A DNA stretch of 64,000 nucleotides from Vitrella brassicaformis CCMP3155 (GCA_001179505.1 CDMY01000485.1:3974-67973); one strand, 5' to 3'. Positions 1 through 34,671 are shown, counted from the first letter of the stretch. Made by a program: numbers and translations. Notes: generated by a model not told the origin, from the letters alone.

Positions 1-1527
1 GGAGGGGGCGTCGAGGGCACACTGCTGGCCACTCTGTTCGGTGGGAGCTGGGACGGCCGTTTCGTCAAGCTCACCGACAGGGACAAGAAAGAGCGGATGT
101 TCGTCGACATGGATTCCGCCGCCTTAAAGGTCATTCACAACGCCATCTTGGATGCCCGGACCATCCGCAGTGCGACCCACCGGACGGCCGACACCCAGGC
201 CTCCATCAGCCACCTGCTCGAAGACGCAAGAAGACGCAACTTCACTGGTGAGTGGGCAAAGTGGGAGGGAGAGGCTGCTTGTCCGTTTGTCCATCTCTCT
301 CTCTCTGTGCTGGGTGTGTGCAAACAGGGCTTCACGATTTCTGGATCAAGAAGATGCTGTCACCAATCGACTCGGCTGCTGCAGGGACCACTGGTGACGT
401 CACTAATCCACGGCTGTCGGCCAATGACACCCCCAATGAGCTGAGTGACTTCGTGAAGGCGGCCGATGCCTTCGTCAAGGCGTTCGCCGCTGAGAAGGCC
501 CGGCTGGAGGGTGAGCTGGCGGCCGCCAAACGGCGGTATGAGAACCTCGGCAACGAAATCAAGGTGACTGATGATCAGAAAGCAGCTGCAAGAGGACGAG
601 CTACATATACCTCCGATGCTCTGCCTATGTGTCTGTGTGTGTGTGTGGATCAGGCCCTCACGCCATTCCTGGCGCCTCTGAATGGCGAAGATCCGATCCG
701 TTCCGTGAAGGTCTGTGGAGAGAGCATCGCCACCACACAATCGACCGTCGACGAAATGAGCGACAAACTTCGGAACCGCTTTGACATGTAAGCGCCAGGC
801 AGATACCCAATACACGACGGTCCACTGGTGCTTTATGTGTGTGTAGGTGGTCGCGACCAGTTGAGGACGTTCAGCCCGAACACGTCAGCCGTATGGTCGA
901 CCACTACCGCCGCAAACGGCTCGGCGCGTCGGCCGCCGACATGGCTGCGGTGCTGACGATGGCCAGTGCGACAGAGCAGCATGCCTTCGACGCCAATGCG
1001 TTTATGTATGGCCTCACCGACGAGAGCCCCAAAGCCAGCAAAGCACATCAGACATTGTGAGTAGGACGAGGAAGCACAGGCACTCATGTGATGATTGTGT
1101 GCACTGTTGATCGTTCAGCGGTGGCCTCGGGCAAGTGCCATCCATGCAGCAGCGACGGTAAGACACCAACAACACACTGCACTCGTGTCTTCACTCACTG
1201 TGTTGTCTGTCACTGCTCAGTTTTGGCTTCGCGCAGATGTCGAATGGAGTGCAGTACAAAATCGTGCAGCAGGGCAGTGGGCCCAAACCGACACGTGACC
1301 AGAGGATCAAGTACGACATCGTCGATTGGCGTGACGACTTCGACGGACAAGACAAGATATGCGAGGACCGTGGGCGGGAGTATCATGTGTCTAGTGCTGT
1401 TGAGTGGTGGCAGGAGCTCTTCACTGACATGCGTGTGGGTGAGGTGCGGCGATGCATCGTGCCGGCCACACCAGCCGGTAGAAATGAGCTGTATATCGAG
1501 TATAAGTTGGTGTCCATTACGTCTTAA
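1..1527 (+). CDS. BTB/POZ - coiled coil - BTB-like - FKBP-like protein, copy 1 (5' end lies upstream of the window)
   Basis: Frame 1 opens inside a T1/KCTD-type BTB (GTLLATLFGGSWDGRF...RMFVDMD). Spliced exons give GLHDFWIKKMLSP, ALTPFLAPLNGEDPIRSVKVCG, WSRPVEDVQPEHVSRMVDHYRRKRLG and an FKBP-like C-terminus (SNGVQYKIVQQGSGPKP...DFDG...EWW...MRVGEVRR) ending at TAA 1525-1527. Splice phases join in frame. Confidence 0.85.
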
Positions 1528-2300
1528 GGGGCGGACGAAATTTGTGTGCGCTCCAGGAGATTATCACTAATGCGAGTGTGGGTGAGATGAGATGCCAGTT
1601 AGGATGAGCGTTATTGGAACAGAGTGATGATCTCTTGCCGTTTGGCTCCTTGTCATTTGCTCGACTGCTCTTATGGAATTTGGTTTGCTGCTCTGCATTG
1701 CGCTGGCTGGGTGTGCGGTCAACCTGCTCTGTCCTATAGTGTAGCAAAGTATCCAATTTTGCTTTGCTTACATTCATGACGACAAGACGACACACATGAG
1801 CGAATTCTGTTCGTTAACAGGAAGGGAAGTCACTCGCACACGCAAGCAGCCACTCATGCAAGGCAACACGTGCACTCTGACACGAATCACAGACACATAG
1901 CGGAGCTCTGCAAGAGTCATCATCGGATCAAAAATCCCCCCACCGGCACGCCCTTCTCGCCTTAGACAGGGCCGCCAGTGGGATCGATCACACCAGCAGC
2001 AGCGGCAGCACGAAAAGCACAGCAGCAGGGAGGGAGGACATGCAGTGGTGGGAGGGGGGTTGATTTGTACATACGGCTAGAGAGCTGGAGAGCTATGTAT
2101 CCATCCAAGAAATGAATGAACACCATGCAGCAACACAGAGGAAGAAAAGCGGCACACAACGAAAACCTCTCACACACGTGTGACAAAAACCCATTGGCCA
2201 TGTCAGCATCATGAAGAAGGGCACGAAGATAAGAGAGAAAAGCCCAATGGCCGCCCACCCGCCCAGCCGGCCTGTCTGGCTGGCTTGCCGGGCAGTCTGT

Positions 2301-5015
2301 CTATCCGCCCTTCCTGAGCATGTTCATCATGCCGCCCCCGCCCCCGGCCCCCCCACCGCCCAGCATGTTGAGGAAGGGCGTGGCGTACTCCATCGCCCGC
2401 ACTGGAGGGTGCTCCACCGCATCGAACTGCGTGTAGCGGGGCTTCAGGTTGTTGCCCTTGATCCTGAGCGAAAAGACACACCCACACACTCTCTCTCAAG
2501 TAGGTTGGTTGGTTGGTTGTGTGTTGGCGCACCTCATGAAGGCTCCCTTGTTGCCCATCTGGTCGCAGTAGTTGGGCGCGCTGAACACCGTCACCTAAAC
2601 CACACACGACACAAGATACATCGCTGCATCATTCTCTCCCTCTCCCTTCCTCCCTCTGTGCGTACCAGTTTGCCATTGCATTCCTCCTCGTAGCCCTCCT
2701 CCTTCATCTCGTGAGAGCGCACCAGCAGGTCCAGGTTGTTCTCCTTCAGGAACCGCTCAGTCACGTCCGGGCCAAACGCAACCCCCACGCCGCGCTTCGA
2801 CGGTGCCCGGCCATCCAGCTTCTGCGGATCCGACCACAGCAACTCCACCATCAGACCTGCACACACACGCACACACACAGAGAGAGAGTGGCGTCGTGTT
2901 GCAGGATGTGTTGTGGTGGGGGTGGAGACCCTCGTCTGGCGGTTCTCGGTTTCTGTCGATGCTTGCGATGTCGGAGAGCTTGACGCCATCCTTGCTGAAC
3001 AGACCTGCCGGAAGATGGGCGCTCGGCTGTGTGTGTGTGTGTGTGTGGCTGGCTGACCTCCGTGGACGACGAGTATCTTGTTGTTGATGACGTGCGCCAG
3101 CGGCAGCAGGTTGAAGGCCTCAGTGCACAGGTCATACAGCTTCTCGTCGTACTTCTTGATCACCTCACCTGCACACACACACACATAACACACCACACAC
3201 ACATGACAGATCCCCGGAGATGGGCATCTGTCTGCCATCCCCTCCCCTCCCTCCCTCGGCTGCATACGCACGTACGTACCGTGGAAGCCATACATCCTGT
3301 TCATGCTCTGGGCCTCGTGGTTGCCGCGGGCCAGGTGGAAGTGATTCGGGTACAACAGCTTGCCTGCAAACAGCGCCAGGATCACCTGCACACACCACAC
3401 GACGCACACAGACAACCACAAGGGCGTTGTTGTCGTGTTTTGCATCTCTCGATTGTGCGCGTGTGTGTGTGTGTGTGACTGACTGACTGACCTCGACAGA
3501 GAAGGACCCCCTGTCGACGAAGTCGCCGTTGAAGAGGTAGGGGTTGGTCTCACTGGGCGGGCCGTTGATCTTGAAAATGTTCAACATGTCGTAATACTGC
3601 ACACATGCACAACACACACACACAGACAGATGATTGTGGCGCTTATCTGATCTCTCTCTGTCTGTCGGCCTGAGTGGTGATCCACCCACCCAGCCACCGA
3701 CCTGGCCGTGCACATCGCCGCAGATGGTGAATTCCTCCTGTGGCTGCAGGTCGACCCTCACGAGTGTGGGTACCGTCCTGAGCAGCCTGATGATGTCCAG
3801 CACCATCATGTACGCGTATCGCCGATGCAGCACATTGCCGGGGGTCTGCACACAGCAAAGACAGAGAGAGAGAGAGAGCGAGAGAGAGAGAGGTGGGTGA
3901 GGTTATGTCGCTCCGGTTGGTGGGCAGACCTACCTTGATGTATTCTGTGAGCTGGTGGAAAAACTCCTTGTCGATGCTGCCGCTCCTGTAGTGGGGGCCC
4001 TTGTACGACGCGTCCACCTCAATCGACATCGGGTCAACCGTCTCAGACGCCGGCTTGGTCCGATCTGACAGCCATACAACCACCACCACAGCACACACAC
4101 ACGTGTACAAGAGCATCAGCAACAGTGTATGTATGCGTGTCTGCCTGTGTGTGTGTGTGTCTGCCTGAGTGTGTAGAGTGTGGTGTGTTACTCACCGATG
4201 CTGATGGCCTCGGCGAACTTCTGTTCCCTGACCTGCTTCTGGCACTCCTTGAGCCGCGCGGCCGCATCGGCGTCCAAACCGCCCCCCATCTTGGTCACCG
4301 CTTGAAAATCTATACACACAAACAGCCAGTGGATGAATCCATGGTGCGGGTGAAGCACACGGTGAGGGAGGGAGGGAGGGAGGGAGGGAGAGGATGAGGT
4401 AAGAAGGTACCTTTGAGAGCATCTTTCCACTTCTGGAGGCACATGTACGCGCATCCTCTGCGGTAGTAGGCCTTGGTAAAGTTGGCCTTCAAATCGATGG
4501 CCTTCTCCGCATCAATGATGGCCGAACCTGCACACAACAAGCCCACACACACACACACGCACACACATACAGAGAGAGGGAGACAGACAGATCCACCGCC
4601 ACACGTGGCACACGTGCGCTGCGCTGGTTGACCGACCGTAGTTCTCCAGCCGGAGCTGTGTGAAAGATCTGTTTGAGTAGTAGATGTGCAGGTTTGGGTT
4701 GGTAGGCGTGGAGGCGTCGATGGCCCTGGAGTACTCCTCCTCTGCATGGATGAAGTGGTTCTGCTTGAACAGCTCGTTGCCCTTGTCCTTGTACTTCTCC
4801 GCCAACTCGTCGTCGCCATCGCCGTCACCATCACCGTCACCGTCAACATCAGCCTGTCCCTGCGGCGGTTGCCCCTGCGCGTTGCCGTCAAGGTCTGTCT
4901 CCTCTTTGACCATCGCGGCCGGCGGGTCAGCGGCGTCGATCTCGCCGTTGTCCTTCTCACCCGACTCGCGACTCGCTGTTGAGTCCGTGTCGGCAGATGG
5001 CTTTATGCCGTTCAT
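2301..5015 (-). CDS. PP5: Serine/threonine protein phosphatase 5 (TPR + PPP catalytic domain), multi-exon
   Basis: TPR motifs ([39 protein letters not shown]) are followed by the PPP signatures [33 protein letters not shown] and [10 protein letters not shown]. Stop is at 2301-2303. The start is uncertain: MNGIKP at 5015 is preferred, but the ORF stays open to 5201. Confidence 0.95.
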
Positions 5016-5251
5016 TGTGGTGTTGCGTGACCCCACAGGGTTTGGGTGCAGGGTTTGCGGGTCACTGCCCGCGAAACGAAAGAGAGGATCCTGAAAAGTC
5101 TTCCGTTGTCCGATATTGAGCATCTTGTCCTGTCGCCACTGTGTGCAGCCCAGCGACCCGTGTCCCTGCCCGAGTAGATAGACAGATCTGTTGCTGCTCA
5201 CCTATCTCCCGCCCCTCTGATATTGACTGAAAGAGTCACACTCTCCACGCG

Positions 5252-6485: not shown

Positions 6486-6499
6486 ACACACACAGACGC

Positions 6500-9400: not shown

Positions 9401-9600
9401 CTATTTCTCGTCTTGGCTGGGGAATGTACAAGTGGGTAACACACAGACACGAATCGACGACTCAACGCATCACTGTCACCCATGAGACATACCAAGCGAG
9501 TGCAACTCCGTCCATTCAGCGAACGAGCAACACCCGTTGACACACATGATCCACTGATACCTTGTGGACACACACATTGCTTCTTCGCGATGGATTCGAG
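6500..9600. repeat. Microsatellite-rich intergenic region: (GGAT)n, (GTCT)n/(GACA)n, (CCTG)n, (TG)n, (ACGT)n
   Basis: Simple tandem repeats are directly visible, e.g. 6965-6978, 7214-7229, 7950-7992, 8364-8381 and 9231-9246. ORFs here are low-complexity artefacts. Confidence 0.8.
8539..8552. promoter_or_regulatory. Palindromic TATA-like element GGTTTATATAAACC
   Basis: A perfect 14-bp palindrome with a TATA core in GC-rich context. A second TTTATA lies about 60 bp upstream. No transcript can be assigned to it. Confidence 0.25.
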
Positions 9601-9671
9601 CCCCTTCCTGTGAACGTGATCGCACTGCGAGCTTGAAGGTGAGAAGGTGAGAAAGGGCACTCAACGCGGCG

Positions 9672-12031
9672 ATGGAGGAGCACAGGGTGTCACGGTCAAG
9701 ACCAATGGCGAGAAGCGCCCCTCCCCGCTCACAAGATGAGGACGAGCAGCGTGCGTCATCTCCTCCAGCCGTCGCATCGCCGCCACGCAGCCTGTGGTCC
9801 GCCCACAAGGCCTTCATGCAGACCTGGGGAGGCCAGCTGGTAAGCGCTGAGGATCCCCCGACGCGCGAGAGCCGCTTCCTGCGTGGAACTTGTGAGTGTG
9901 TGTGCGTGCGTGTGATTGCAGGAGGAGTGGTGTCGGTTGCTGCTGTATCTGCTGCCCGTTGAGGAGGCTGACCCAGCCACCGAGACCAGAGCACAACTCG
10001 GTGAGGGCAGGAATGGAATGGCCGCGCGGCAGTTCTTTCTGCTCGTGTTATCACTTGTGTGTTGGTTTGATGTGTGTGTGGGTTCTGTGCAGCGTACAGT
10101 GCGGTTGATTTGTTCTCGCTGTACCGTGAGTCCGTGCAGGCGCCCGCAACCGACCTGCCCGTGCTGGCCCGACTCCCAAACAAACAAAAGTGAGACCAGA
10201 GGAGGAACACACCGAGCGATGCAGTCATCCTGGCGTGTCTGTTGTATGTTGTATGTGTGCAGGATTGCGTATGTGTGGCTGAGTCTGGTGCTGCGCAGCC
10301 TGCGGTGCATCCAGGTGCTGCTCGAGATGTGGGAGAGCAGACGACACGGGTTCAGGGCCTCCATGAGGCTCTGCTTCAAAATCGAATGCGTCAAGTAAGA
10401 GGCAGACAGACAGAGAGATACCACCAAACACCCACCATGCACACATCTATCTGCTTTTCTGTCCGTTCCTTCATCCTCACCAACCAGGCTGGTGCTTCGT
10501 GTGGCCATCCAGCAGCTGTCGCCCTTCGGGCTCTATGTCGACGAGGAGTGCCTCTGGTCAACCAGCACCGCTGCGCACCACCAGCTCGAACCACACTCGC
10601 AACACCAGTCGGCATCACCATCGGCCCCGGCACATCCGGCCTCGCGCCTCCCGTGGGTCGGCCGGCGCACGGGCCGCACCATCCGCGAGCTCACCACCCT
10701 CCCTCCTCCCGCACCATCAGCGGCACCGCCACCAGCCCCCCTGCCAGATTGGCAGCAGACGATCCTCAGCTCTGTCGATGCGGACGGGCCCGCCGGGCAG
10801 TCACATGCGCATCAGCAGGGCGCGGCGAGAGAGGGCGTCGGCACTCACGAGGGCGAGGGCGAGACCAGCAGCATGGCGAGCAGCACCACTACCGCGTCGA
10901 CAGACAGCGCCACAGCGGCACCAGGGGCAACGCACAAGCAGGACAGCGAGCCGTCGAGCAGCACCAATGCGTCGCCCTCCCAGTCGCCCGACGTGCTGCC
11001 GCCGCCCAGCAGCCCAACACACGACGGCGACAGGAAGGGCAAGTTCGTCCCTGTCGGTGTGCGTGGGAGGGATGCCTCTCTGACGTCGTCGTCGTATCGC
11101 GAGTGCCCGTGTGCTGCGTGTGCTGCCGGTGGTGGAGAGGGTGAAGACGGTGACCATGTGGACGTGGGAGATGAGGCATTTGGGCGGCGAGGGCGGTATT
11201 TTGTGAGCGAGGCGGACCTGAAAGTGTTGTTTGACCAGTGGATGGCGATCAAGGACATGGCCAGACATGCAGCCGATCCGTCGCGGTGAGTGCAGAGACA
11301 TCCAATGGTTCCAGATGCATTGCATTTCTTCTCCCTTTTGTGTGTGTGTGTCCGTTGCTGCCTTGCCTTACTACAGCCGTGGGTTAGTGTTGGGTGAGGC
11401 CCTGTTCCATCTGCGGCCGCTGCTCCACTCCTTTCTGCTCAGCCAGGGCGGCGACAAACCCGGATGGATGCCATGGGTCATCGCTCTGGGTGCGTGAGAC
11501 ACATCAGACCACCGATGGCCTCTGTCGTCTTTGTGTATCTATGGGGGTGTCTGTCTGTCTGTGTCTGTCTGTTGCTCGTCAGGTATGGATTTGGTGAGTT
11601 CCCAGTGTCTGCACGGCCACGCGCGGCGGTGGAGCTCCTTCACGCCGTTCGAAATGGCGGAGCTGCAGAGAAGGTCAGCCATGTCACATCACGAGATCCA
11701 CACCAGCCACAGCTGTCTTCACGTGTGTCTCATATTGTGCATGTGTCTGTGTGCGTGTGCGTCAGGCGTAGCGCCTTGTCGTTGGCGCTGGTGCGGTCGC
11801 CGTTTTTCGACAAGTTCCTGGAAGCACCATGTCAGCAAATAAACAGACTCTGCGCGGCGGTCGTCACCACTATTGGACTCTTGTGCCTGGGCTGTTGTTG
11901 TTGTTGTTGTTGTTTATGCAGGTGTGCAGCTGGACCATGTGATCAAGCGCATCCCGTTCCTGTCGCTCATCAGCGCACTCGACACCTTCCTCGCACTCCG
12001 GCCATACTTCTTCTCCACCAGCGGCAGCTGA
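9672..12031 (+). CDS. PEX16: Peroxisomal membrane biogenesis protein Pex16 with a long low-complexity insertion
   Basis: Spliced product shows Pex16 hallmarks: N-terminal LEEWCRLLLYLLP, LRCIQVLLEM...IECVK, GEALFHLRPLLH...WMPWVIALG, EMAELQRR...LVRSPFFDKF and C-terminal IKRIPFLSLI...YFFSTSGS* (TGA 12029-12031). Start codon uncertain. Confidence 0.85.
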
Positions 12032-19850: not shown

Positions 19851-22313
19851 TCACTCTTCACTGCAATCTTCAAAGGCTACGCGCTGCCCCTCGGCATCGC
19901 GAGACCTCGCCTCCACACACAGGTCCTTGAGTCGTCTAGCGGCTTTCTCGGCCTCATCCCAGCCGACTTCCTCCACGGGATCTCGGTTGGCCTGGTGCTC
20001 CGTGGTGATAGTGGCGAGGGCTCCGTCAAGCGTTTTCTCTACGCCGGCGCGCTTCGTGAGGATCTCCTGCGTGGATTGGTTGCACTTGGGGCTCATGAAT
20101 GCCAGATGGCTGAGCACTAGTGCCACAAACCTGCACAGAGACAGACAGACACACAGACAGACAGACAGACAGACAGACAAGCAGGCAGAGACATGCGATC
20201 GTGCACACAGCTTTTCGCGTCTCACTTTATGAGGCCTGTGTGTGTGGGATGCTCCTCCATGGCCGAGATCAATAGCTCTATACCCTGTCAGTGTCTCAAG
20301 CAGGGATAAGTAAGGCTACCTACTGCATGCCTCTCATTCCTGACCTCACCTCATTCTCGATGATTTTGTGGTGACCAAGATCGACCCTGATGCACAAACT
20401 GCGTGCACACAGAGACACGACCCCACAATAATATGATGCGCCTCGAGGGCGGCATAAGGGATGAGTGGCCGTGTTGTCCGTCTGTCTGCCTCAAGGTGAG
20501 TCTACCTACCAGTATAAGAGTTGGGCGACTGCGTTGCACACCTTGCCGTCCTCGACAAATCTCCTCAGCCCAGTGAGGACCCTGACCAGCCCGTCGTCCT
20601 TCAGCAGCTTGGCACGCAGAGTCGAATCATTGGCCGAGATGGCTGCAATCGCATGGCAGCCCAACCCAAAGACGTCCTTGTCGTTCTGATGCACACGCAT
20701 GGCCTCCATTATGTGACCTATCAGTCAAGGGTGAGACAGGAAAGAAACTCAGTGTGATTGGGTGCAATTGATCAGGCAGGCGCAACATGTACGTCTCGTT
20801 ACCGAGAGCCAGCTTGTTGTCGAGGCTCTGGACGCCGTCCTCCTCAAGCCCGATGATGGACAGCAGCTTTGACAAGCTCTGTTGGACCTTCGGGTCATGC
20901 TTGTGGAACCCCACTAGCTCCAGCATGAAGCTCAGATCTTTTCGAAAACTCACTCGGGTCACGTGCCGGCGATTCGCCCTACTCTTGAAGCACATTCTGA
21001 GCCGACGGACAGACAGACAGACAGACGTGACCTCCTGTCTGTCTAACTGATGCCATGCTCACGTACTTGGCGATCGCAAGTAGGCATAGATGGACCACTC
21101 GACCGCTCACCACACCATATTTTCGCGCCACTTCAGCGATTGCGGGAAAACACACGCCCAGCTCTGGTCATAGAGAGCACAAGACATGATGTTAGCAAAC
21201 AGGCGTCTTCGTGAGACGCCTCGCACCTTCAGCTTTTGGGCCATTCGTCGAGGCCTCGATGATCTTCTTGAGAGCCGACTCAATGATGGGAAAGTCTCGG
21301 TCAAGGTCTCCTGTGTGGCAGAGACGTTCATGCAGAGGAAAGCATTTGTGTGTCTCTCTTTTGCTGCTGGTCGGTACCTGTGAGGCTTCTGAGGTTGGCC
21401 ATGATTGCGTTTGGCAGTTGGATGTTGTCAATGTCCATCTCATCTAGCTTGGATGCTGTAGCGCAAGCCGCTCTAACATGCGACTGTTCCTGACAGACCA
21501 CCGTAGGCAGGCAACAAGGGGCAGAGCATCGCAAATGAGACACATCCTCTACATCGATCGATCAATCGCTTCCAAGACTGCCTGAATCACCACATTGGCG
21601 CTGCGATGACCCATTGTGGTTGATGAGCTCGCCTCCTGACGCTTCAAAGTTGTACCGTTGCTGTGATAGAACAGACGCAGGTGACAGAGTGTGAGCACAT
21701 GTACTCTCTCTCTCTCTCCAACTCACCTATGGGTATCTGCAAAAACGATGATCTTGTCTTTCGCAGAGGCCGGCAGGGAGCGCAGTTCGCCGTCTACTAC
21801 TGTGGCATATCCTCCATGGCCGTCAGCATACACTGGGCAGCCGTCCAGCAGACCAACCGCCCGAGACCGCCTGTCGGGCTCCTGCACAAAACAAACACAC
21901 AACCATGGTTCGTTGACCTGTCTTCCCCTCTGTATCGGTGTGTGGTCAGTCACCTCTGCCAGACAGCCTCCCGACGGCATCCTTGCGTCCGAGAGGCTCT
22001 CGGTGTCAACGGGCGGCCGGCCCGGCCCGCCACTGCCCCGATGGACGATTCGCTGCATCCCGCCAACCAATCAGAAAGTGAGACCTGCACGCACCGCAGG
22101 ATGACACGACATCCCACATGAATCAGATTCAGAGCGGTGCCGTGCCTGTGTCTGATCTGAATCATCTGACCGTCTGTCGGTGGGCCGTGTGCGGGATCTG
22201 GTGGTTTCAGAGGAGGGGGCCTGCATGAAATACACACAGATATGAAAGGACCTCGTCGGATCAGCGGTTGCCGTCACCCTTTGCCCACCTGTTCTTCCCT
22301 CGGCAGGTTTCAC
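19851..22313 (-). CDS. Armadillo/HEAT-like helical repeat protein, multi-exon
   Basis: Exons join in frame with ARM-like repeats: ELGVCFPAIAEVARKY, FMLELVGFHKHDPKVQQSLSKLL, IMEAMRVHQNDKDVFGLGCHAIAAIS, GLVRVLTGLRRFVEDGKVC and GIELLISAMEEHP. Stop at 19851. The 5' exons and start are uncertain. Confidence 0.6.
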
Positions 22314-22471
22314 CTGCGAGCTGAGACGCCCACTGGCGGCGAGCTGAGAAAAACTCTCTCCAAAAGCACCAGATCATCCGAGGCACTGAAAGGTACGAGA
22401 GAAATGCACACACTCATGAGACTTATCAACTGCTGTGTTTGTTGTATTGTGTCAGATCTCCCCGCTCTGGC

Positions 22472-23584
22472 ATGTACAGCGACGTCAGGAAGCTGGTGGC
22501 CGACGCCCAAGCCGCCATCGGCCATCAAACCGAGGTGCCAGGCAGCGACGCCAGTGCGGCCTCCAAGCTGGTGCTCTTTCACTCGCCGACGTCGGTCTGC
22601 AGTGAGAAGTGTCGCACGGTGCTCTTCGAGCTCAACCTGCCCTTCACTTCCCACGCAGTCAACATCCTGGCTCACGACAACTATCACCCAGCGTATGTGG
22701 CCCTGCGTGTGGCGGCTTGGCAGCAGAGTGGCCTTCCCATGGCCGGCGAGAGCGACTATGAGTGGACGGGCAGCAGCAGCGTGGCGGCCAACGGCGTGGA
22801 CTGCTGCGTGGTGCCCACCTTAGTGGATATGAGGGGCGACGGCGAACCCAAGATCGTCATCGACTCATCGGCCATCTGCGAGCACCTGATGGCCGGCACC
22901 GGCCTCCTGCCGGCCGACCCACACAAGGCGGCGATTATAGAGAAGCACATCAAGCTGGTGGACGAAGTGCCCCACCCCGCGCTGCTGTATGAAGGCAATT
23001 CCGTGCACGACAACCGCCCCTGGTTCGCCAAGGTCATGATCGGCAAGGCACACTCCGGGCAGATCGCCGCACTCAAGAAGCGCCTCGCCGAGAAGGGCAA
23101 GACATGGGATGACCCACTGCTGGAAAGGGCCTACAAGGCCAAGGTCAACAAGACCAAGAAGGGGCTGGCCGCGCCGTCCAAGCCGACATACCTCACAGCA
23201 GCTGTGGACAAGACGATGAGTGTGCTCAAGGAGCTGGAAGCCGACCTGGCGGCACACGACGCAGATGGCGGCAGCAGCTATGTCTCCGGCGACAGCATCA
23301 CTGCGGCAGATCTGTTCCAAGCCGTCAATCTGCACCGCCTGCTGCTGCTGGGCAACAGCTGGATGTGGCAGGACCTGCCCCATGTGGCAGCATTCGCCGA
23401 CCGGATGCTGTCGCGGCCGTCGATCCAGAAGGCCGTGATCACCTACCCCGGCATGATCCCCTCACGGCCGACAGCCGACCTCATCACGAAGGATCAAGGC
23501 TTCATCGCTGGCTTCATCCACGGCAGACGCGTCGATTTCCTCAACAGCCTCGTGTTTGTCATGCGACTTATCGGCATGGCTTAA
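22472..23584 (+). CDS. Glutathione S-transferase, LinD (2,5-dichlorohydroquinone reductive dechlorinase)-like; CDS has no introns
   Basis: A single 370-aa ORF with a GST-N fold (LFHSPTSVCSEKCRTVL...VVPTLVD...IDSSAICEHL) and GST-C (ADLFQAVNLHRL...PHVAAFADRMLSRPS). The upstream intron at about 22393-22456 appears to lie in the 5' UTR. Confidence 0.9.
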   Translation: MYSDVRKLVADAQAAIGHQTEVPGSDASAASKLVLFHSPTSVCSEKCRTVLFELNLPFTSHAVNILAHDNYHPAYVALRVAAWQQSGLPMAGESDYEWTGSSSVAANGVDCCVVPTLVDMRGDGEPKIVIDSSAICEHLMAGTGLLPADPHKAAIIEKHIKLVDEVPHPALLYEGNSVHDNRPWFAKVMIGKAHSGQIAALKKRLAEKGKTWDDPLLERAYKAKVNKTKKGLAAPSKPTYLTAAVDKTMSVLKELEADLAAHDADGGSSYVSGDSITAADLFQAVNLHRLLLLGNSWMWQDLPHVAAFADRMLSRPSIQKAVITYPGMIPSRPTADLITKDQGFIAGFIHGRRVDFLNSLVFVMRLIGMA

Positions 23585-24418
23585 GATGGGGTCTGCCCTC
23601 CTTTGGCATCACGTGCACGAGCTCCGAGAGGGTGCTCTGTAGGTGATTGACAGGGCGGAGGTGCGTTGTGGATGTATGTATGTGTGTGGAGTGAGGGAGA
23701 TTTACTGTGTTTTGCTGTCTCTCAGTGGCTCATCCGATCGACGAAGGGCAAAGGAGTGCTCTTGCTGCATGCAGAAGCCAGCACATAGATGCCTGGCTGG
23801 CGTGGAGGATTGTCTGCCTGTCTGACTGTACGACGCGGTTTTTGTAGATGGAAGGGCAGTCATTTGGAGTCAGTTTGGATGTGTGAGGGCTCTGCCGCTT
23901 GCTTGAGAGTGTGTGTGGCGACACTTTCTGATTCCGTCGACACACTTGTCTGCCGTAAACAATCCTTCCGACCAGCAGCAGGTTTATGACTATGAATATG
24001 AATGGCGCCGAAAAGGTGCTCTGTGATTGACTAGGTCGTGTGTGAAGGCGGCAAGGGATGTGGTGTGTTAGGGTGTGAAGTTGACTCCGAACAGTCAATG
24101 TACATCGTATGTGTTTGCATCTGTCTTGCTCTCTGGGTCTGATGCGGTGGGGCTGACGCTCTCAGTCAAGTGTCCATCCATCAATGGTTTCTCCCACCAC
24201 ACACCATTGGATAAAAGGCATCTGCACCGGTCATCGTGCGCTTGCAATAAAACAGGTCTCATCACTTGCTCGCCACACATCTCAGGCACACAGAGAAATG
24301 CCCTTCACGCCAAAGGTACCCAACACACATCACTAAGCAGTCCGTCAGCATGCAAAAACGTACGAAGGGACACACCGCCACACGCACACGGCACTGACCG
24401 CCCGTCCCCGACGAACAC

Positions 24419-26065
24419 TCACAGGATGGCTAAGAGCCTGTACTCGATGTACAGGTCCTTTCCAGTGGAGCTGAGTCTGCCCGGCTTGATGACCCGCCGC
24501 ACCTCACCCACACGCATGTCAGTGACGACCTCCTGCCACCACTCAGCAAACCCAGACACACATAAGACCCGCCCACGGTCCTCGCCTATCTTGTCTTGTC
24601 CGTCGAAGTCGTCACGCCACTGGATGAAGTCATACTTGACGCGCTGGCCACGGGTCGGTTTTGGTCCACTGCCATGCTGCACGACTTGATGGAAGACACC
24701 CGACGGCAACCGAACAAACATCCGCTGCGTGAGGCCATCGCCACTGCAATGGTAAACAGGACGACAGATGGCGACACCAGCCCGGCCTGTTGCTGCCCTC
24801 GAACTGCACACCTGGTGTCTGAGATGACTATGTCTGTCTCGACGCCGTACATGGCCGCGTTGATGTTGAAGGCTACCTGCTCAGTCTCACTGGCCATTGT
24901 CAGCACCACAGCCATGTCGGCCGCCGACGCGCCGAGCCGTTTGCGGCGGTAGTGGTCGACCATACGGCCGATGTGGTCGGGCTGCACCACCTCGACGGGC
25001 CGAGGCCACCTACACACAAAGGCACACACACGCACACACAGGCAGCCATCGGTGGGTATCTCTGTCATTGTCAGGCTGTTCATGTGTGGCTGACATATCG
25101 AAGCGGTTATTGAGCTTGTCGTTCATTTCGTCGACGGTGGACTGTGTGGTGGCGATGGCGTGGCCGCAGACCCTCACTGACCGAATGGGATCCTCGCCAC
25201 TCAGAGGCGCCAGGAATGGCGTGACGGCCTGGTCGCACACAGACACACAAACAGGGCGCAACAGATGAACAGCTCCCCTCTCTCCCCCCATCCTGTGTGT
25301 CACCTTGATCTCGTTGTCGAGGTTTGTGTATCGTCGCTTGGCGGCCTCCAGCTGCCCCTCCAGCCGGGCCGTCTCTGTGTTGGCTGCCCTCACGATGGCC
25401 TCCACGGCGCTGACCAGGGACCCACTGTGGGCGGGAAGGCTCTCGGCCGATATGTTGGGCTCGCCATCGGCAGTCGGAGGGGCGTCTGAGGCCGCTTTGT
25501 CGAGCGGCGACAGCAGCAGCTTGACCCAGAAGTCATGCAAACCTGCACCACACAGCCCAATAGAAGCGTAGCTGACCTCGCGGCGCCTCTGCTCACCTCT
25601 GTAGTCCCGCTTGGTGGCCTCATGCAGCAGGTGGCCGACCGACGCCGCCCTGCCTGCGCTGCGAAGCGTCACGGCGTCGAGGATTGCCTTGTGGATGGCC
25701 TTAAAGGCCTCTGGGCAAACGTCCACGAAGATCCTCTGCTTGTCGTCCTTCCTCAGCCGGCCGTCCCAGCAGCCCGAGAACAGCGCCGCCAGCAGAGTGC
25801 CCTCCACGCTGTCGCCCTCCGTCATGTGCTTGCGGCTCACATGACACTCGACGCCGCCCACACTCAGTGTCAGCTCGTCATCGGGCGATGCGCTTGACGG
25901 GTCGGAGGCGCCGTGTTTCTGCCTCTCTCGATGGGCGGCATCGTCGGCTTGGCGGATCTGGGCATGCAGCTGGCCGATGGCGTCGCCGATGGCGGTGACA
26001 GGCACGTGCAGCCTATCGAGAATCGCAATGGCGCTGAACTTGCGAGCGGCCAAGTCGGCGTCCAT
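24419..26065 (-). CDS. BTB - coiled coil - BTB-like - FKBP-like protein, copy 5 (apparently intact)
   Basis: Starts MDADLAARKF. BTB ELTLSVGGVECHVSRKH...LFSGCWDGRL. Same exon structure as copies 4 and 6. FKBP-like exon ends AIL* at 24419. Confidence 0.88.
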
Positions 26066-26479
26066 CGTCGCTGCTCAACAGATCTCTCAGACCTCTCTGT
26101 GGTGAGCACCTGAATGTCACACAGACAAACGGGATGAATAGATCTTGTTCTTGTTGACTGCTGTGTCACACCCTTGCCTCACCTGATGACATCAGGGCGT
26201 CAGATGATGCCAAGATCTCCTCCGTGCCTCCCTTCTTCAAAAGTCTGAGCTTGCAGGACGCGTGGGAAGGGACGGACGTGGATGTTCACAGCGGGGCCCG
26301 CGGCAGAGGTGTCGTTGCAGGACGACACAGCTTGGGTTCAGGAGCGCGGGATGGATGTATGGATGACTGAATTGATGCCCTTTCCGCCGTATGACGTCGG
26401 CATGGCATCGGATGCGATGTACTTATGGATGCCTCAGGCAGAGGATGATCAGTCGGCCCAGACCACACCATCGGGCACC

Positions 26480-29042
26480 ATGATTAGCAAGGTAAGTAAG
26501 AGAGATCTGGGTCGGAATATGACCCCATGAGTGATCAACAGGTTTGCTGGTGTGCTGTGGTGTGCGTTGTTTGATGCAGTTGTGTACTGACGCTAGTTTG
26601 TTGCGCGAGGGCCTCCAGAGGCTGCAGAGGGACGCACAGCAGAGCCGTGAGGCGTGCCAGCGAGATGGCGGCGGGGTGGCCGAGGCGTTGCTCTCGTCTG
26701 TGGTGTCACAAGTGTCCGTTGCTGAGGCCTCGATGGCCGGTGCAATGGACTCCCTCACCGCAACGGCGGCCATAGCCCTCCCGCAGCCAATGGACGACGT
26801 CAGTGCGTCCGCTGCTGCTGCTGCTGCTGCTGCTGTGGCCATGGAAGCGCCGCCCGAAGAGCCCAATGCTGAGGTCCGGAGGGAGGGATGAATGCGGGGT
26901 GGCATCTGTTCATTTCTGTGCTGTTGCTGTGTTGCTGGCTGGTGCAGAGTAGTGCTGTGGTAGAGGAGGAGGAGGCCGCCCCGACGCCATCGTTTCGCCT
27001 GGTCCACACGTCGGGGAAACCGCCGCCGAACAGTGGACCGGTAAAAGCAAGACAACAAAGACCGCCCATACGTGCACGACCCTGTCGACCTCTGTGTGTG
27101 AATGTGTGTCTTGTACAGCCGTCCCTTCGCCTCTCCCCCGATGAGCTGGCGTGTGTGTTCGGCTTCTACCAGCCCTCAGAGCTGACGCGCGTCGCCACCA
27201 CGATCGGCAAGACGGTCTTCGGCTGGGCGGCCAAGCGATACACCCACCTGACCATCGACGGCTCGGACAAGGGCGGCGTGCGCCAGCAGTGGGAGCGAAT
27301 GCCCCTGGAGGTGGCACACCGGTGGGGCCAGCGGGCCACCAACCTCACACACCTGCACGTCATCTACAAGAACCAAGCCAGCCGCTGGTGCCGTGGGACC
27401 TGGGTGGCGCTGATCGACGGCAATGCAGCGGCCAGGAAGGCCATGAGCCGCGAGAGGGAGGGGCAGTGCGGGGCAGCGGCAGCAGCCAGAGGGCCGGACA
27501 GGCCATCCGCGGCGTCATCCATCAAGGTGCTCAGCTTCGAGGAGGACAGCGACGGAGAACCATACGATGAGGGTGAGGACGTCTCGTCCGCCCCCCTGCC
27601 CCCGTCCCCCTTGCCCGTCGACCTGTCGGTCCTCGAGGAGGTGCACGACATGCCATACGCCTGTGCGGCCGTCCGCATGGGCGACCGCGTGTGGCAGACG
27701 CCATCCATGCGGGTCATGACGCTCAAGCAGGACGAGTGCGATGCTGAGGCCGTGATGGCAAAGTGGATGGCGTCGTGCGAGCATTTGGAGGTGTTTGACG
27801 ACGGAAGCATCTTCGAGATCACGACAGAGCTGCTGACCATGCCGCCCCCCGGCACCTCCCTCGTCCGCCTGCGGTCCATGGGCACCCTCAACCTGGACAC
27901 CGTCGGCACCATCAATCCAGGTCGGGTGGCCGACCTGCGGCAGGCCCTTGTGGCGCGGGGATGTCACATGTCCCTCCGCGAGCTGCCCATTGAGGCCACC
28001 GAGATCACGGCTGAGCACAAGGGGCTGCTGCGGGAGGTGCCGTCGCTGTCGGCGGCAGTGCTGCAGCCGGAGGCCCTCAGCCAGCCGCAGGTGGTCAAGA
28101 AGGCAGACAATCTCGAGATGGAGCTGGAGCTCATCGAGTGGATGGCCGAAGAAGCGCCTCAGGTAGCCAAGACACCACGGGCTGCTGCGCCTCAACACCT
28201 TCAGGCACAATTATCCCCAATGCGGTCTGTCTGTGTGCCTGCAGGTGCAGAAGCTCGTTCGAGAGTTTGCCGCTGTCACCGATGTGGTCTTCTACAAGAA
28301 CGAGCTCACCGACCCCAACGCCGCCGGACACGCGGCCGCATATTTCCCCCGCGCCACCACATTCCGCTGCAATGCGGGACAGCTGCCGCCGCGGGTGCGG
28401 AGCGGCTTGGCCAAGACGGTCGCCAACATGCCCCAGTGCAACACCATCGAATTCGTGGATAATCTCGAGGCGCACCAGGAAGCGCCGAAGAATGCTGTGG
28501 CCTTCCTGGAGTCACTCAAGAGGCACATGGCCACAGGGAAGGGGCCGGGGGCCGGGGAGGGGGGCGATAGCACCGAGGGGGCGACGGAGCGGAGCCTGTC
28601 AGTGCAGATTGAGGTGTCGGCGAATGGCATCTTGCACCACAGCCGGCCGCTGCAGAAGTGGGCGAGCCACGACCTGCCGGCCATCGACGAGGTCACCGTC
28701 TTTGTGATGGGTAAGCACAGTGGGTAAGCAGGGCCACACGAGGTAGACAGCCCACCTGAGCAGCACACACATCACAAGCTTTATGTGTGTTGGCTGCTGT
28801 GTGCAGACGGGCTAGAAGAGGACGACTCGATGGAGGCCTTGTACGGCTCGGTGATGGCGTCGCTCGTCGGCATCATGTCGCGACCCGGTGTGAGCAAGGC
28901 GTCCATTGTCTTCCTGAGTCTTCACGACCTTGGCCATATGAGGCGGCTGTTCCAGTCGCAGCTCGCATGGTTCAACCTGCTGGACACACCATACACCATC
29001 ACCATGGAGGAGGTCACCATCACCGTCGAGACGCGCACGTAG
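26480..29042 (+). CDS. Uncharacterised F-box-like protein, copy A (multi-exon)
   Basis: In-frame exons MISK / LCTDASLL... / SSAVVEEE... / PSLRLSPDELACVFGFYQPSELTRV (F-box-like) ... / VQKLVREF... / DGLEEDD...ITVETRT*. It has a paralogue at 35016-37632. The F-box call is weak. Confidence 0.7.
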
Positions 29043-30479
29043 ACGATACCACAGCTGGTGAAAGGGAACGAACAGGGCGGACAGAGAGGGCACGTGTGTG
29101 CATCTACTTGGTCGTCTGTTATGTTTGTGTGTGCGGTTTCAGGTAGCCGTAGACATCGGCAGCCTGACTGCTGTTGGGGCATTGGTGGCTGCGGGCGGGG
29201 CGGAGGGGAAAACAGCCGATCGAATCTCTGTTGTTGATTGTGGATAGACACTAAAGGATAAATGGACGGATGGATGGATGGGGATATGTGTTGCGTGCAG
29301 CGGCTGTCAATGAGTGTGTGAGACCAACTGCTGGAATAACATGAATCCGTGTGTATACATAAGCTGGGTCCGCATCGGCCTCATCGACTTCACTCCCCAC
29401 TCCCGCTGGCCCCTTGCATGATGCACGTGACATGAGATCGTCAGCCATTATTCGAACACACACATGTGGTTCTTGTGCTGTCCTTATGTGTGGTATTATG
29501 TCAGGTGTGTGTGCTATGCGGAGCGGTGCTTTCTCGCTCGCCTCGAGACACTGGCCAAACACATGATCTTCCTCAGGATAAGATGGACGCACTCTCGTAT
29601 CGCATCGCCGCTGTGCGGCTGTTTGTCTTATCGGTCGCTAGGGTCGGGCCCGAGCAACACGGCAGCGACATACTCACCAGTGTCACCACCATCAAACCGT
29701 CAGACGCTGCGGACCGGGTGAGGTACACCGCAGCGTGTCTGAATACGTACACCGACAATGTCTGTCTGCCTCTTTGCAGATTTGTGGCATTGGTGCTCAA
29801 CCAGCAAGGGCACCAGGTGGCTGTGGTGATGGGCTCAGGAGGGCGGCCTGAGTCGCGTGTGCCGAGTGTGCTGTGTCTCAAGTTGCGAGACTGACTGACT
29901 GACTAACCTATGGGTCTTGAGTGTGTGATCTTCCACTCACGCACAGCCACTGTTGTTCATTCGTCCGTATATGACAGACATACAGTAGATAGCCATTCAT
30001 GAGCTGACTGACTGAGGACCGAGGATCTGATGACACTGTATCTGTGAGCTTGAGGGGTTGCGCTCTTAAGGTGTATTCAGCAATGTGGCCATTCAGGCAG
30101 GCAGATCGAAAGAGAAGAGACATATCGCGAGGAGACTTGCGAAATCGGCACATCGAGCAGGGGGCGGCAATTGTGGGCTGGGCGTCTCGCGCCAGGGCAC
30201 CCCGTGGGGCGAAGATGTGGGGTTTGCTGCACACGCAGCGCAGCCCCCGTGTGCAGGGCCAGGACGGCGGCAGTGTGAGAGACTGCCCCAGTGGTGTTGA
30301 TGAGACGTGCTACATCCAGCTGCCGAGAGTCGACGAGGGCGACGCTGCCGCACAGCAGGCCATGATCCACCACACACAGACAGACCATCCCAAGGTCACC
30401 CTGCAATGCCCTTGTGGCACAGTGGCCAGCGGAGGCCTCTGACGAGTGGCGTCTGTGTGCGTCTGTCTGTCCACTGCAG

Positions 30480-32246
30480 ATGGCGTCGGCCTCGAGTGAG
30501 CACATTCCTCTGCTGCTGGACGATGGCCAAGGGCTGACGGAGCCCCAGCTGCCCGACGTCACCGATGACATCACCAAGGCACCGAGACGCTTCGAGCAGG
30601 TGGGTTGGTGTCAGTCGACTCTGAGGCCTCTAGGACGTCTGTGTGTCGTCTGCAGGTCCCCTTGGTGGGCGCCCCGGCCGCCGACAATTGGTATCCGACA
30701 GATGCACTGAGACGCAGCATCAGATGGGCCATCGACGACAAGGATGCGGAGGGCCTGCGGAAGGTCCTCGACGGTCTGTCGCCTGAGCAAACCGAGAAAG
30801 TGCTGACGACTGGATGGGAATATGGGAGCTCTGCCATCCACTACGCCGCACGTAGGCATCGTCGCACCACTGCACACACATGATGCAGCTGAGTGGCCCC
30901 TGTGTGTGCTTCTCAGTCAAGTGTACGGATGTGGCGGTGTTTGAGGTGCTGCTGCACAACCGACACGACCTGCTTTACCTGAAAGATAAGGTGTCGTGCT
31001 GGACCATTACACTCATTCCGCTCATTAGCCGGCCGATATCTTTCTTCTGTGTCTGTAGGAGGGCGACACGCCTCTTCACAAGGCAGCACAGAAAGGGTCA
31101 GTTGGTTTGTGGAGCAGTCTGTCGAGTGGGGCGGAGAGGAGCTGCTGGAAGCTCGGACCAACGTTAGGACGAGGGAAATCTCGACTGGTGCATCGAACAG
31201 CAAGCGTCTTCTGTCATGCTGTGATTCAGATTGGCTGGAAGATTGGCTGGACGCCTCTTCATGATGCAGCATGTCAGTCACTCCTGCAAATGATAGCCAC
31301 ACAACTACATGAGTCTTCAACGTGTCTCTCCTGCAGTCTCGGGCCATGCCGATGTGGTGGCGGTGATGTTGAAGGTGGACCCACAGCTCTTGAAAATCAA
31401 AACCAGCGTAGGCTGCCCGCACCAATCGACTCTGGTACCTCAACTGTCCCCGCCCGCTAATGTGACAGGAGGGAAAGACGCCTTTCGATTTTGCCCTCAG
31501 AAAGCCGAAAGTCGTCGCTGTGATGGCTGTCGTGGCTGGAGACGTGGCCATGAAGCTGCTCGAGCAAGGCGCGAAAATGGAAGAACTGGACGCCCATGAT
31601 CTCAAGGAGGTGGTGCCTTTCACGAAGGGGTTCCTGAAGGACCGCTCTGATTCGCTGGGCCTCGACAGCCTTCGCTTGTGTGCCTTCTTCCGCAAGCTGA
31701 TGCAGGCACGACAGAAGGACTCCCTCACAGAGTGCGATTGAATGGAGAGGAGGGGACATCATGCGAACATCTGCATGCTTCTTCGTCTCTCTCTCTCCTC
31801 TCTTTTCTTTTTCGTTCTTCGTGCAGTGACTTTGAGAATATTTCCAACTGGCAGGAGGTAAACAGTAAGGACACACACAGTCTTACTTGTCGCATTGATT
31901 GGGGGGTACGATCCGGGTCAGGCACTCACAGCGACTTTCTGCAGCGATACCAGGATGCAAAACTTTGAACAGTCACTTAGAGGCAAAGAGAAAGAATGGT
32001 TCGCGGCGCTCGAGTCTGCGGAGCCCCTCACAGTAGTGACTCAAGGTAGCCAACACAGAGACTTCACCCCCTTTTGGCTGTCGGCCGCTCATGGCGTCGT
32101 CCTTCTGCCAATGATTGTGACAGCCAACTCCATCTCTCTCGTCACAAAGCATTGGCAGCCGCCACCAGTTTTCAGGATAGGCTGCTTTTGCCGGTCGATT
32201 GATTTTGGACCCCGTGATGTCTTCATTACCCGCGTGCTGTCAATGC
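30480..32246 (+). pseudogene. Ankyrin-TRP channel copy A: frameshifted and truncated before the pore
   Basis: Ankyrin exons are homologous to copies B and C. There is a 1-nt deletion near 31107 (GTTGGTTTGTGGAG versus GTTGGTGTTGTGGAG). The first TM exon breaks at 32246 and runs straight into sequence that is the 3' flank of the intact copies. Confidence 0.85.
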
Positions 32247-33066
32247 GAGTGCATGTGTGTGGATCGGCAGAAACCAGTGAGTCCGTGGTTGGTTGCGTCT
32301 GGTGGATGTCTGTCTGTGTTAGGCCAATGGCACGGCAAAGCATAGCATAGCATAGCGTCATATCGGTCCCCAGCGCTCTTATCGTCCAGCCCCACGGGCG
32401 TCGCTCTCTCTCTTCAGATTCGCTCACAGTCAGTCAGTCCGCTACAGAAAAAAAGGAGGCGCAGGTACACAGCTCACCTCACCCCTCACACAGCAGCTCA
32501 CACCACACCATAGCATAGCAGAGTCAGTATGGCACACACACATGGAGGTCCCATGCACCACACGCAGCACAACACAGCACCACCGGCGAGAAAGTACAGT
32601 GGATCAACCGCACCACGTCGTCAACAAGACACCACTCACCCACCAGTCCCCCTGACCCAGCAGCCCAACCCCATCCCACATCACCCCGACCATGGCCCCA
32701 CTCGCCGTGCCGCCCCCCACTGCAGATTCGGGGCGGCACGGCGCACAGCAGTGAGTGCACGGCAGGCAGACACGTACGTGAGAGCCTCGCCCACACACAT
32801 TTCGCTGAGCATCCCCTGGACACGCATTTCATCAGCATGCCTGGTACATGAATTTAGCTGATTTCGAGGTCAGTCATCTGCACTGATCGTGCGCTTGCAA
32901 TAAAGCAGGTCTCATCAATCGCTCGCCACACGTACACAAAAGGCACACAGAGGTGTGCGTTCACGCCCAAGGTACCCAGCACACATCACTTAACAGCACA
33001 CTACCATGCCACGGGAGAGTAGAATCCCGGCCCCGACAAACACTCACGCGAGGGAGGAGAGAGAGC

Positions 33067-34671
33067 TCACAGGATGGCCAAGAGCCTATACTCGATATAC
33101 AGCTCCTTTCCCACACGCACGATGCATCGCCGCACCTCACCCACACGCATATCAGTGACGACCTCCCGGGCCCACTCGGCCCGATCAGACACACGAACCT
33201 CCCGCCCACGGTCCTCGCCTATCTTGTCTTGTCCGTCGAAGCCGTCACGCCAGTGGATGTAGTCATACTTGACGGTCTGGTTGCGTGTTGGTTTGGGCCC
33301 ACTGCCCTGCTGCACAATCTTGTACCGCACTCCAGACGGCATCTGCGTGAAGCCATCGCCACTGCAAAGGCAAAAAAGACGACAGATGGCGACACCAGCC
33401 CGGCCTGTTGCTGCCCTCGATCTGTCCACCTGGTGTCTGAGATGACTATGTCTGTCTCGACGCCGTACATGGCGGCGTTGATGCCGAAGGCCGCCTGCTC
33501 AGTCTCACTGGCCATTGTCAGCACGACAGCCGTGTCGGCCGCCGACGCGCCGAGCCGTTTGCGGCGGTAGTGGTCGACCATACGGCCGATGTGGTCGGGC
33601 TGCACCACCTCGACGGGCCGCGGCCACCTACACACACGCAGGCACACAGGCAGCCATCGGTGTGCATCTCTGTCATTGTCAGGCTGTCCATGTGTGGCTG
33701 ACATGTCGAAGCGGTTTTTGAGCTTGTCGTTCATTTCGTCGACGGTGGACTGTGTGGTGGCGATGGCGTGGCCGCAGACCCTCACTGACCGAATGGGATC
33801 GTCGCCACTCAGAGGTGCCAGGAATGGCGTGACGGCCTGGTCCCACACAGACAGGCACACAAACAGGGCGCATCAGATGAATAGCTCCTCTCCCCCCATC
33901 GTGTGTGTCACCTTGATCTCGTTGTCGAGGTTTGTGTCTCGTCGCTTGGCGGCCTCCAGCTGCCCCTCCAGCCGGGCCGTCTCGGTGTTGGCTGCCCGCA
34001 CGATGGCCTCCACGGCGCTGACCAGGGACTCACTGTGGGCGGGAAGGCTCTCGGCCGCTATGGTGGGCTCGCCATCGGCCCTTGGAGGGGCGTCTGAGGC
34101 CGCTTTGTCGAGCGGCGACAGCAGCAGCTTGACCCAGAAGTCATGCAAACCTGCACCACACAGCCCAATAGAAGCGTAGCTGACCTCTGTGCCTCTGCTC
34201 ACCTCTGTGGTCCCGCTTGGTGGCCTCATCCAGCAGGTGACCGACCGACGCCGTCTTGCCCGCACTGCGAAGGGTCACGGCGTCGAGGATGGCCTTGTGG
34301 ATGGCCTTGAAGGCCTCAGGGCAAACGTCCACGAAGATCCTCTGCTTGTCGTCCTTCCTCAGCCGGCCGTCCCAGCAGCCCGAGAACAGCGCCGCCAGCA
34401 GAGTGCCCTCCACGCCGTCGCCCTCCGTCAGGTGCTTGCGGCTCACGTGCCACTCGACGCCGCCCACACTCAGTGTCAGCTCGTCATCGGGCGATGCCCT
34501 TGACGGGTCGGAGGCGCCGTGTTTCTGCCTCTCTCGCTGGGCGTCGTGGTCGGCTTGGCGGATCTGCCCATGCAGGTGGCCGATGGCGTCGCTGATGGCG
34601 GTGACAGGCACGTGCAGCCGATCGAGAATCGCAATGGCGCTGAACTTGCGAGCGGCCAAGTCGGCGTCCAT
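33067..34671 (-). CDS. BTB - coiled coil - BTB-like - FKBP-like protein, copy 6 (apparently intact)
   Basis: Nearly identical to copy 5 through the BTB exons. FKBP-like exon MPSGVRYKIVQQGSGPKPTRNQ...EYRLLAIL* ends at 33067. Confidence 0.88.

Follow-up and report, generated by a model that had tools for sequence, protein, structure and literature searches.

A 64,000-nucleotide stretch of the genome of Vitrella brassicaformis CCMP3155 (contig CDMY01000485.1, assembly GCA_001179505.1), referred to as a whole as the window, carries five paralogous five-exon genes together with a sixth gene that encodes an FKBP-like domain only. The proteins of the five genes run from a T1/KCTD-type BTB domain through a heptad coiled coil and a probable second, degenerate BTB-fold domain to a C-terminal FKBP-fold domain. 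We predict, with about even confidence, that this much enlarged, Vitrella-specific family provides interchangeable target-recognition subunits (substrate receptors) of ubiquitin ligases. The two BTB domains and the coiled coil would assemble into an oligomer for docking on a cullin-type ubiquitin ligase and would display the FKBP-like domains as non-catalytic, variable target-binding heads, and the family would constitute a repertoire of substrate receptors that diversified through tandem or segmental duplication and through swapping of the FKBP exon.

Domain architecture and splicing

Gene 4 (24419–26065, minus strand), for which a hand-built model was identical to protein P0001 (454 amino acids), served as the reference copy. 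Its N-terminal T1/KCTD-type BTB domain comprises residues 58–165 and spans intron 1 (25516–25894), and is followed by a heptad-repeat helix read as a coiled coil (residues ~196–236; 25304–25426), the probable second, degenerate BTB/T1-fold domain on exons 3 and 4 (residues 237–345; 24812–25228), and the FKBP-fold domain, which is encoded with the stop codon on a single exon (residues 347–454; 24419–24743). The four-part order put forward in the initial annotation of this DNA is borne out by profile, fold and heptad evidence, with the probable second BTB recognizable at the fold level only.

For the N-terminal domain, the family profile matched the BTB domains of Plasmodium K13 (4yy8, expectation value E = 3.7 × 10−5), SHKBP1 (4crh, E = 2.8 × 10−4) and BACURD3 (5fta, E = 7.6 × 10−4; KCTD10 in the fold search). 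Pfam BTB_2 (PF02214) matched 9 of 24 family members, with a best E of 5.2 × 10−6, and single copies from the window fell just below its cut-off (20.3 vs. 21.4 bits). A 3-4 spacing of hydrophobic residues, conserved family-wide over ~40 residues (~196–238), fits a coiled coil of about five heptads. For the middle domain, all 50 rows listed by VIA-align were POZ folds (Z up to 6.3), among them the K13 BTB (Z 6.3), the Kv4.3 T1 domain (5.5) and KCTD10 (5.3). Residues 237–345 of the ESM Atlas model of P0001 gave ten structural rows, all BTB_2/T1 or Skp1-POZ (template modeling score, TM, 0.60–0.68) and headed by a BTB/POZ/TLDc cluster. A metagenomic relative, P0079, has two Pfam BTB_2 stretches, the second exactly where the middle domain of the family aligns. 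Judging from these models and alignments, the middle domain is probably, if not provably, a degenerate second T1-type BTB.

We mapped Logan contigs of four sequencing runs onto positions 24300–26200 to follow splicing of gene 4. Contigs from runs X1 and X6, which belong to two studies, skip 25229–25303 (75 nt) and 25543–25596 (54 nt), both with CT..AC ends, which are introns 2 and 1 of this minus-strand gene; runs X2 and X3 retain the introns and therefore represent DNA. One contig ending at 24746 runs on into 17 letters equal to 24815–24831, and a second that begins at 24812 carries in front of it 8 letters ending at 24743, so that both contig ends mark the junction of exons 4 and 5. The FKBP-exon side of the contig ending at 24746 is unique to gene 4 within the window. 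These RNA-derived junction contigs show that splicing joins the FKBP exon to the BTB exons, as the initial annotation had assumed. Transcriptome open reading frames marked complete (P0014, P0016 and P0017) likewise carry all four parts, and some of these assemblies may be chimeric.

Fold and variable pocket of the FKBP-like domain

Homology of the C-terminal domain to FKBPs is visible in sequence at the profile level only. Single copies from the window scored 13–16 bits against Pfam FKBP_C (PF00254; cut-off 21.1), and two copies had no match, while a profile of 22 FKBP-like domains of the family matched Legionella Mip (E = 5 × 10−9) and then other Mip-like FKBPs. AlphaFold2 run on the family alignment gave a confident model (predicted local distance difference test, pLDDT, 91.3; predicted TM 0.82), with which Foldseek retrieved 205 matches in the PDB (E ≤ 0.001). 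FKBPs accounted for all of the top 50, with TM scores by query of 0.61–0.80, and the best matches, Legionella Mip among them, reached 0.72–0.80. The FKBP fold proposed for this domain, in which an antiparallel sheet of five strands wraps a short helix, is thereby confirmed; the domain is derived from Mip-type FKBPs and has kept the fold core.

What has changed is the ligand-binding region. The HMMER alignment to Mip ends at a conserved proline directly before the 80s loop, and from this proline to the last strand there are 10 residues compared with 19 in FKBP12, making the loop ~9 residues shorter. The F99-equivalent column is mostly V, I, R or A. Both features, a largely deleted 80s flap and a substituted F99, had been read from the copies in the window and hold in the alignment. 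We then calculated entropy per column over 84 unique full-length FKBP-like domains (94 instances in 78 retrieved proteins), using for the pocket what we take to be the FKBP12 numbering (Y26, F36, D37, R42, F46, V55, I56, W59, Y82 and F99). The core glycines, W39, D41, the F36 and D37 equivalents, M73, G76, E77, R79 and L100 were nearly invariant. Among pocket residues, only the F36 and D37 equivalents were kept (entropy 0.44 and 1.68), whereas the equivalents of Y26, R42, F46, V55, I56 and W59 and the loop remnant were the most variable (3.1–3.6). Mean entropy was 2.85 at the eleven pocket-equivalent columns and 1.84 elsewhere (permutation P = 0.0007; P = 0.002 without the loosely mapped Y82). 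An FKBP-type set of pocket residues with an intact 80s loop was not preserved across the 84 domains, and the former ligand pocket appears to be the diversified part of the domain.

A stretch within the FKBP exon of gene 4, 24492–24555, had a summed k-mer depth 10–40 times that of its flanks in all four runs. It encodes the nearly invariant motif M-R-V-G-E-V-R-R and is evidently conserved at the DNA level in many FKBP-like copies.

Exon history and selection

Synonymous divergence (dS) between genes 4 and 5 was 0.43 in the FKBP exon and 0.07–0.11 in the scaffold, while the relationship was reversed for the pair of genes 4 and 2 (FKBP exon 0.44, scaffold 0.7–1.3). Aligned as DNA, the six FKBP exons form a visible mosaic, scaffold and FKBP identities were weakly correlated (r = 0.39), and the nearest neighbor differed between the scaffold and the FKBP part in 16 of 22 proteins. 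The discordant dS values, mosaic alignment and discordant neighbors indicate that the FKBP exon has a history separate from that of the scaffold, and suggest that it diverged through exchange or conversion among loci. The exon behaves as a mobile cassette: besides its own history, it occurs alone, in arrays and fused to RING fingers.

Duplication has also acted on larger segments. Genes 4 and 5 lie within a tandem segmental duplication of ~8 kb (24216–32246 vs. 32872–41046, 79–86% identity), of which each unit comprises a BTB-FKBP gene, its head-to-head neighbor (a 735-amino-acid product without a Pfam match) and an ankyrin gene. Gene 3 represents a copy in inverted orientation, and the TRP-channel region next to the duplication recurs once more in inverted form (39049–44375 vs. 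59688–54410).

The ratio of nonsynonymous to synonymous divergence (dN/dS) was 0.3–0.7 throughout all domains, indicating purifying selection overall. At ten pocket positions chosen a priori, the nonsynonymous proportion (pN) was twice that of the rest, a level reached by 49 of 5000 random sets. Positive selection was not shown, as dN/dS values of 1.4–1.7 at pocket and loop codons were obtained only with positions picked post hoc.

We also considered whether one scaffold gene might be joined to alternative 3′ FKBP exons. Four proteins (P0016–P0019) have scaffolds that are 100% identical over residues 58–345 and FKBP parts that are 35–78% alike. Alternative exons were not supported, as the locus of P0018, on a 16-kb contig, has one scaffold and a single FKBP exon and the other FKBP versions are absent there; the FKBP part of P0016 is identical to that of P0015, another genomic gene. 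The mismatch more likely stems from chimeric transcript assembly or strain differences, and unassembled copies could be a further cause.

Distribution of the family and related fusions

A word search with the 351-amino-acid open reading frame of gene 4 returned 28 proteins, of which those with a named source were all from Vitrella brassicaformis CCMP3155 and the remainder derived from sets of transcriptome or metagenome sequences. When 1.84 billion representative proteins were scanned in full by HMMER with the full-length profile, 1764 matches were obtained at E ≤ 0.001, 25 of them at E ≤ 1 × 10−30; we scored 174 proteins with three domain hidden Markov models and looked up their sources. Among the best 150 of the 1764 matches, the BTB-coiled coil-BTB-FKBP-like architecture was confined to Vitrella or to transcript and metagenome sequences that cluster with it, and no fusion of BTB and FKBP was found outside Vitrella. 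A canonical BTB-FKBP protein from elsewhere would be expected within these 150, which points to restriction of the architecture to Vitrella, where the proteins are spread over at least 14 contigs. Nor did we find a description of it in the literature on Vitrella with FKBP or BTB, or on TLDc with BTB and KCTD, in keeping with the initial remark that no described BTB-FKBP architecture was known.

Both halves of the protein occur in other contexts. The FKBP-like module forms arrays of six copies (P0031) or four copies (P0033, P0034 and P0038), makes up many small single-domain proteins, and has RING fingers as fusion partners in P0060, P0070 and P0193. The BTB-coiled coil-BTB scaffold is joined to a RING finger in P0037, has weak TLDc matches in P0041 and P0053, both from Vitrella itself, and in P0055 and P0087, and occurs without the FKBP part in P0049 of Piridium sociabile. 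Among BTB proteins outside the family, the BTB_2-TLDc proteins of various protists are most closely related to it, and TLDc (PF07534) had no match in the 24 family members. Weaker multi-FKBP matches were ordinary bacterial FKBPs, for example from Phycisphaerae. In P0029, P0039 and P0097, family domains are joined to an HMG box or to an N-terminus named after SET or CBM20; genuine fusions may be among these models, alongside gene predictions that were merged.

Comparison with known systems

The family resembles BTB adaptors of Cullin-3 (KCTD5/10/13, SHKBP1, MATH-BTB/SPOP and K13) in its N-terminal T1-type BTB, in having an oligomerization module followed by a separate C-terminal domain, and in its lineage-specific tandem expansion with a variable C-terminal domain, which recalls the MATH-BTB expansions in nematodes and grasses. 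It differs from them in having a probable second BTB fold in the same chain, beyond a coiled coil, and in ending in an FKBP fold rather than a MATH, Kelch or KCTD C-terminal domain. The nearest scaffold relatives outside the family are the BTB_2-TLDc proteins of protists and algae (for example P0079, P0110 and P0118). P0079 follows its second BTB_2, at the position of the family's middle domain, with TLDc, whereas the Vitrella family has the FKBP-like exon instead of TLDc and a far more degenerate putative second BTB.

With respect to the C-terminal domain, Mip/FkpA-type FKBPs (Legionella Mip, 1fd9 and 8bjc; Burkholderia Mip-like; Trypanosoma cruzi Mip) are the best matches in both sequence and structure, spanning profile positions 6–87, although the Vitrella domain has the shorter 80s loop and most pocket residues are not conserved. 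FKBP folds with a degenerate active site, presumably used for binding, are also found in the FK2 domain of FKBP51/52, AIP/AIPL1, FKBPL and plant TWD1/FKBP42, and AIP was a weak match of the family profile (E = 0.53). Those are single conserved genes with TPR/Hsp90 co-chaperone functions, whereas the Vitrella domain is an expanded, hypervariable cassette on BTB and RING proteins. An analogy in overall design can be drawn with TRIM proteins (RING-B-box-coiled coil-PRY/SPRY), which likewise combine an E3-linked scaffold, a coiled coil and a hypervariable C-terminal recognition domain in tandem clusters; the E3 link is predicted in Vitrella, and the domains are unrelated, so that no homology is implied.

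Functional interpretation

Two observations favor a substrate-receptor role. The same module occurs on E3 components of two types without relation to each other, namely BTB scaffolds and RING fingers, which strengthens the putative role as an E3 adaptor, and the location of the greatest variability at pocket-equivalent positions gives circumstantial support for recognition.

Several points weigh against this reading. KCTD-type BTB proteins are not all Cullin-3 binders, KCTD12 and KCTD16 being examples that are not, and some FKBP folds with a short flap, such as trigger factor, retain isomerase activity. At the ten a priori pocket positions dN/dS was 0.89 and not above 1, so that the variability is accounted for equally well by relaxed constraint and by diversifying selection; the pocket positions themselves derive from one HMMER alignment to Mip together with the assumed FKBP12 numbering. 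The second BTB was not recovered by every approach. The family profile of the middle domain had no match in the PDB, and a broader profile of 21 sequences that included distant scaffold relatives reached the Kv4.3 T1 domain at only E = 0.6–0.8, in the expected register. Comparison of the middle domain with the family's own BTB by hhalign gave a probability of 0.1. The AlphaFold model of the middle domain was poor (pLDDT 58.5); it yielded no Foldseek match at E ≤ 0.001, and its list of weak matches was headed by T1/BTB domains.

The family could instead consist of oligomeric prolyl isomerases or chaperones of the Mip/FkpA type, in which an N-terminal oligomerization module and a long helix would carry FKBP domains that act in folding or holding clients, without a link to ubiquitin. 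Among solved structures, the FKBP-like domain is closest to Mip and FkpA proteins, which combine a dimerization module, a long helix and a C-terminal FKBP domain. It has also kept the F36 and D37 equivalents, and some of the array proteins are named peptidylprolyl isomerase in UniRef. We nevertheless consider this explanation unlikely, because variability is among the highest at the equivalents of Y26, F46, V55, I56 and W59, the 80s loop is shortened, and dozens of diverging paralogues with RING fusions suit a recognition module better than a housekeeping enzyme.

Slimmer chances attach to a BTB scaffold unconnected with ubiquitin, in which the proteins would be auxiliary or regulatory subunits of membrane channels or receptors and the FKBP-like domain would bind the channel. 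KCTD12 and KCTD16, as auxiliary subunits of GABA-B receptors, and FKBP12, which binds ryanodine receptors, provide models for such a role. The BTB domains are of the T1 (channel tetramerization) type, and BTB-FKBP genes adjoin ankyrin-TRP channel genes both in the duplicated cassette of the window and at the P0018 locus. Gene neighborhood, however, says little in eukaryotes, duplication of one segment can explain the adjacency, and the RING fusions and FKBP-only arrays are left unexplained. That the family is merely a decaying or selfish set of duplicates, with variability reflecting lost constraint and fusions reflecting gene-prediction artifacts, is very improbable. In its favor are the frame shift in gene 3, some database models that clearly merge separate genes (SET or HMG box with family domains) and some transcript assemblies of chimeric appearance. 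Against it, dN/dS is 0.3–0.7 in all domains, core positions are invariant over the 84 unique FKBP-like domains, canonical introns are conserved, and spliced RNA-type contigs specific to gene 4 were found in two studies.

Gene models and neighboring genes

Searching the window with the gene-4 model (tblastn) recovered exactly the six copies within 35 kb that had been reported at the outset: 1–1518 (plus strand, clipped by the window start), 14725–15024 (plus, the FKBP-like part alone), 15902–17399 (minus), 17822–19418 (plus), 24422–26065 (minus) and 33070–34671 (minus). Beyond 35 kb, the same search of the window gave no further family copies. Proteins P0028, P0003, P0001 and P0002 (genes 2–5) mapped back onto the window with a common five-exon layout and canonical GT..AG introns. 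The exon structure said to be shared by all five genes therefore held for genes 2–5, while the annotated model of gene 1 has one 39-nt exon more.

Gene 1 (1–1527, plus; P0012, 473 amino acids) is clipped by the window start at residue 84 and has coding segments at ~1–249, 330–563, 654–788, 848–1054, 1120–1158 and 1222–1527, the last being the FKBP-like exon. On the minus strand, gene 2 (15899–17528; P0028, 444 amino acids) has exons at 17114–17528, 16780–17027, 16558–16694, 16293–16496 and 15899–16229 (FKBP-like), gene 4 at 25597–26065, 25304–25542, 25095–25228, 24812–25009 and 24419–24743, and gene 5 (33067–34671; P0002, 444 amino acids) at 34203–34671, 33912–34150, 33703–33836, 33430–33627 and 33067–33361 (FKBP-like).

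Gene 3 (17822–19421, plus; P0003) has exons at 17822–18275, 18328–18566, 18638–18771, 18845–19042 and 19111–19421, and was counted initially as a full member of the family. Its exon layout agrees with this; its FKBP-like exon is frame-shifted, with AAA at 19202–19204 where all five paralogues have AA, and the annotated product stops at 380 amino acids because of the extra A. The shift is either a real lesion, making the gene a pseudogene, or a homopolymer assembly error.

The sixth gene (13949–15027, plus) does have the FKBP-like domain alone, as proposed, and is annotated as a multi-exon gene with a 199-amino-acid product rather than a bare exon. Its FKBP-like exon (~14725–15028) is 87% identical in DNA to that of gene 4, and its N-terminal part is similar to that of P0050, a small transcript-derived protein. 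Identification of P0081 with this gene was rejected.

Several unrelated genes lie among the family copies. A multi-exon serine/threonine phosphatase gene occupies 2591–5201 (minus), with a Metallophos match (E = 3 × 10−14) in the open reading frame at 2591–3553. Its upstream exons look TPR-like by eye, which would make the gene PP5-like, and Pfam TPR had no match in the open reading frame at 4512–5201. Genes called at ~9672–12031 (plus) and 19851–21980 (minus) have Pex16 and weak ARM_LRRK2 Pfam matches in the precomputed annotation, and an intron-less open reading frame of 381 amino acids at 22439–23584 (plus) matches the GST N- and C-terminal domains (E ~2 × 10−6). On contig CDMY01000842.1 (7668–15482), the BTB-FKBP gene of P0018 adjoins an ankyrin/Ion_trans/YVC1_C (TRP-type) channel gene, and a small gene for an FKBP-like domain lies on the opposite strand, the same neighborhood as in the window.

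Biological significance

Eukaryotes have repeatedly built up large sets of ubiquitin-ligase receptors from BTB and RING proteins whose recognition domains vary. To our knowledge, the folds so far known to serve recognition on such receptors are MATH, Kelch, SPRY, LRR and WD40, and we know of no case in which the FKBP fold serves as a variable recognition head of a ubiquitin ligase. If the substrate-receptor prediction is correct, the FKBP fold would be added to these as a hypervariable recognition head on BTB and RING scaffolds, and the family would exemplify an enzyme pocket turned into a binding site. The single-exon cassette, given its separate history, also offers a clean protist example for studies of gene conversion and exon shuffling.

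Vitrella is a free-living photosynthetic relative of apicomplexan parasites, and K13 is the artemisinin-resistance protein of Plasmodium. As the K13 BTB is the nearest one with a solved structure, the family may help explain the working of BTB scaffolds of the K13 type in this lineage. We also entertain, tentatively and as an unlikely reading, a diversity-generating system of ubiquitin-ligase receptors in which gene conversion and segmental duplication would move an FKBP exon, with a reshaped and rapidly diversifying pocket, between E3 scaffolds of the BTB and RING types. Such a system would give Vitrella a repertoire of degradation receptors for fast-changing targets, for example viral or parasite proteins, and would be an algal counterpart of the TRIM-SPRY or MATH-BTB systems.

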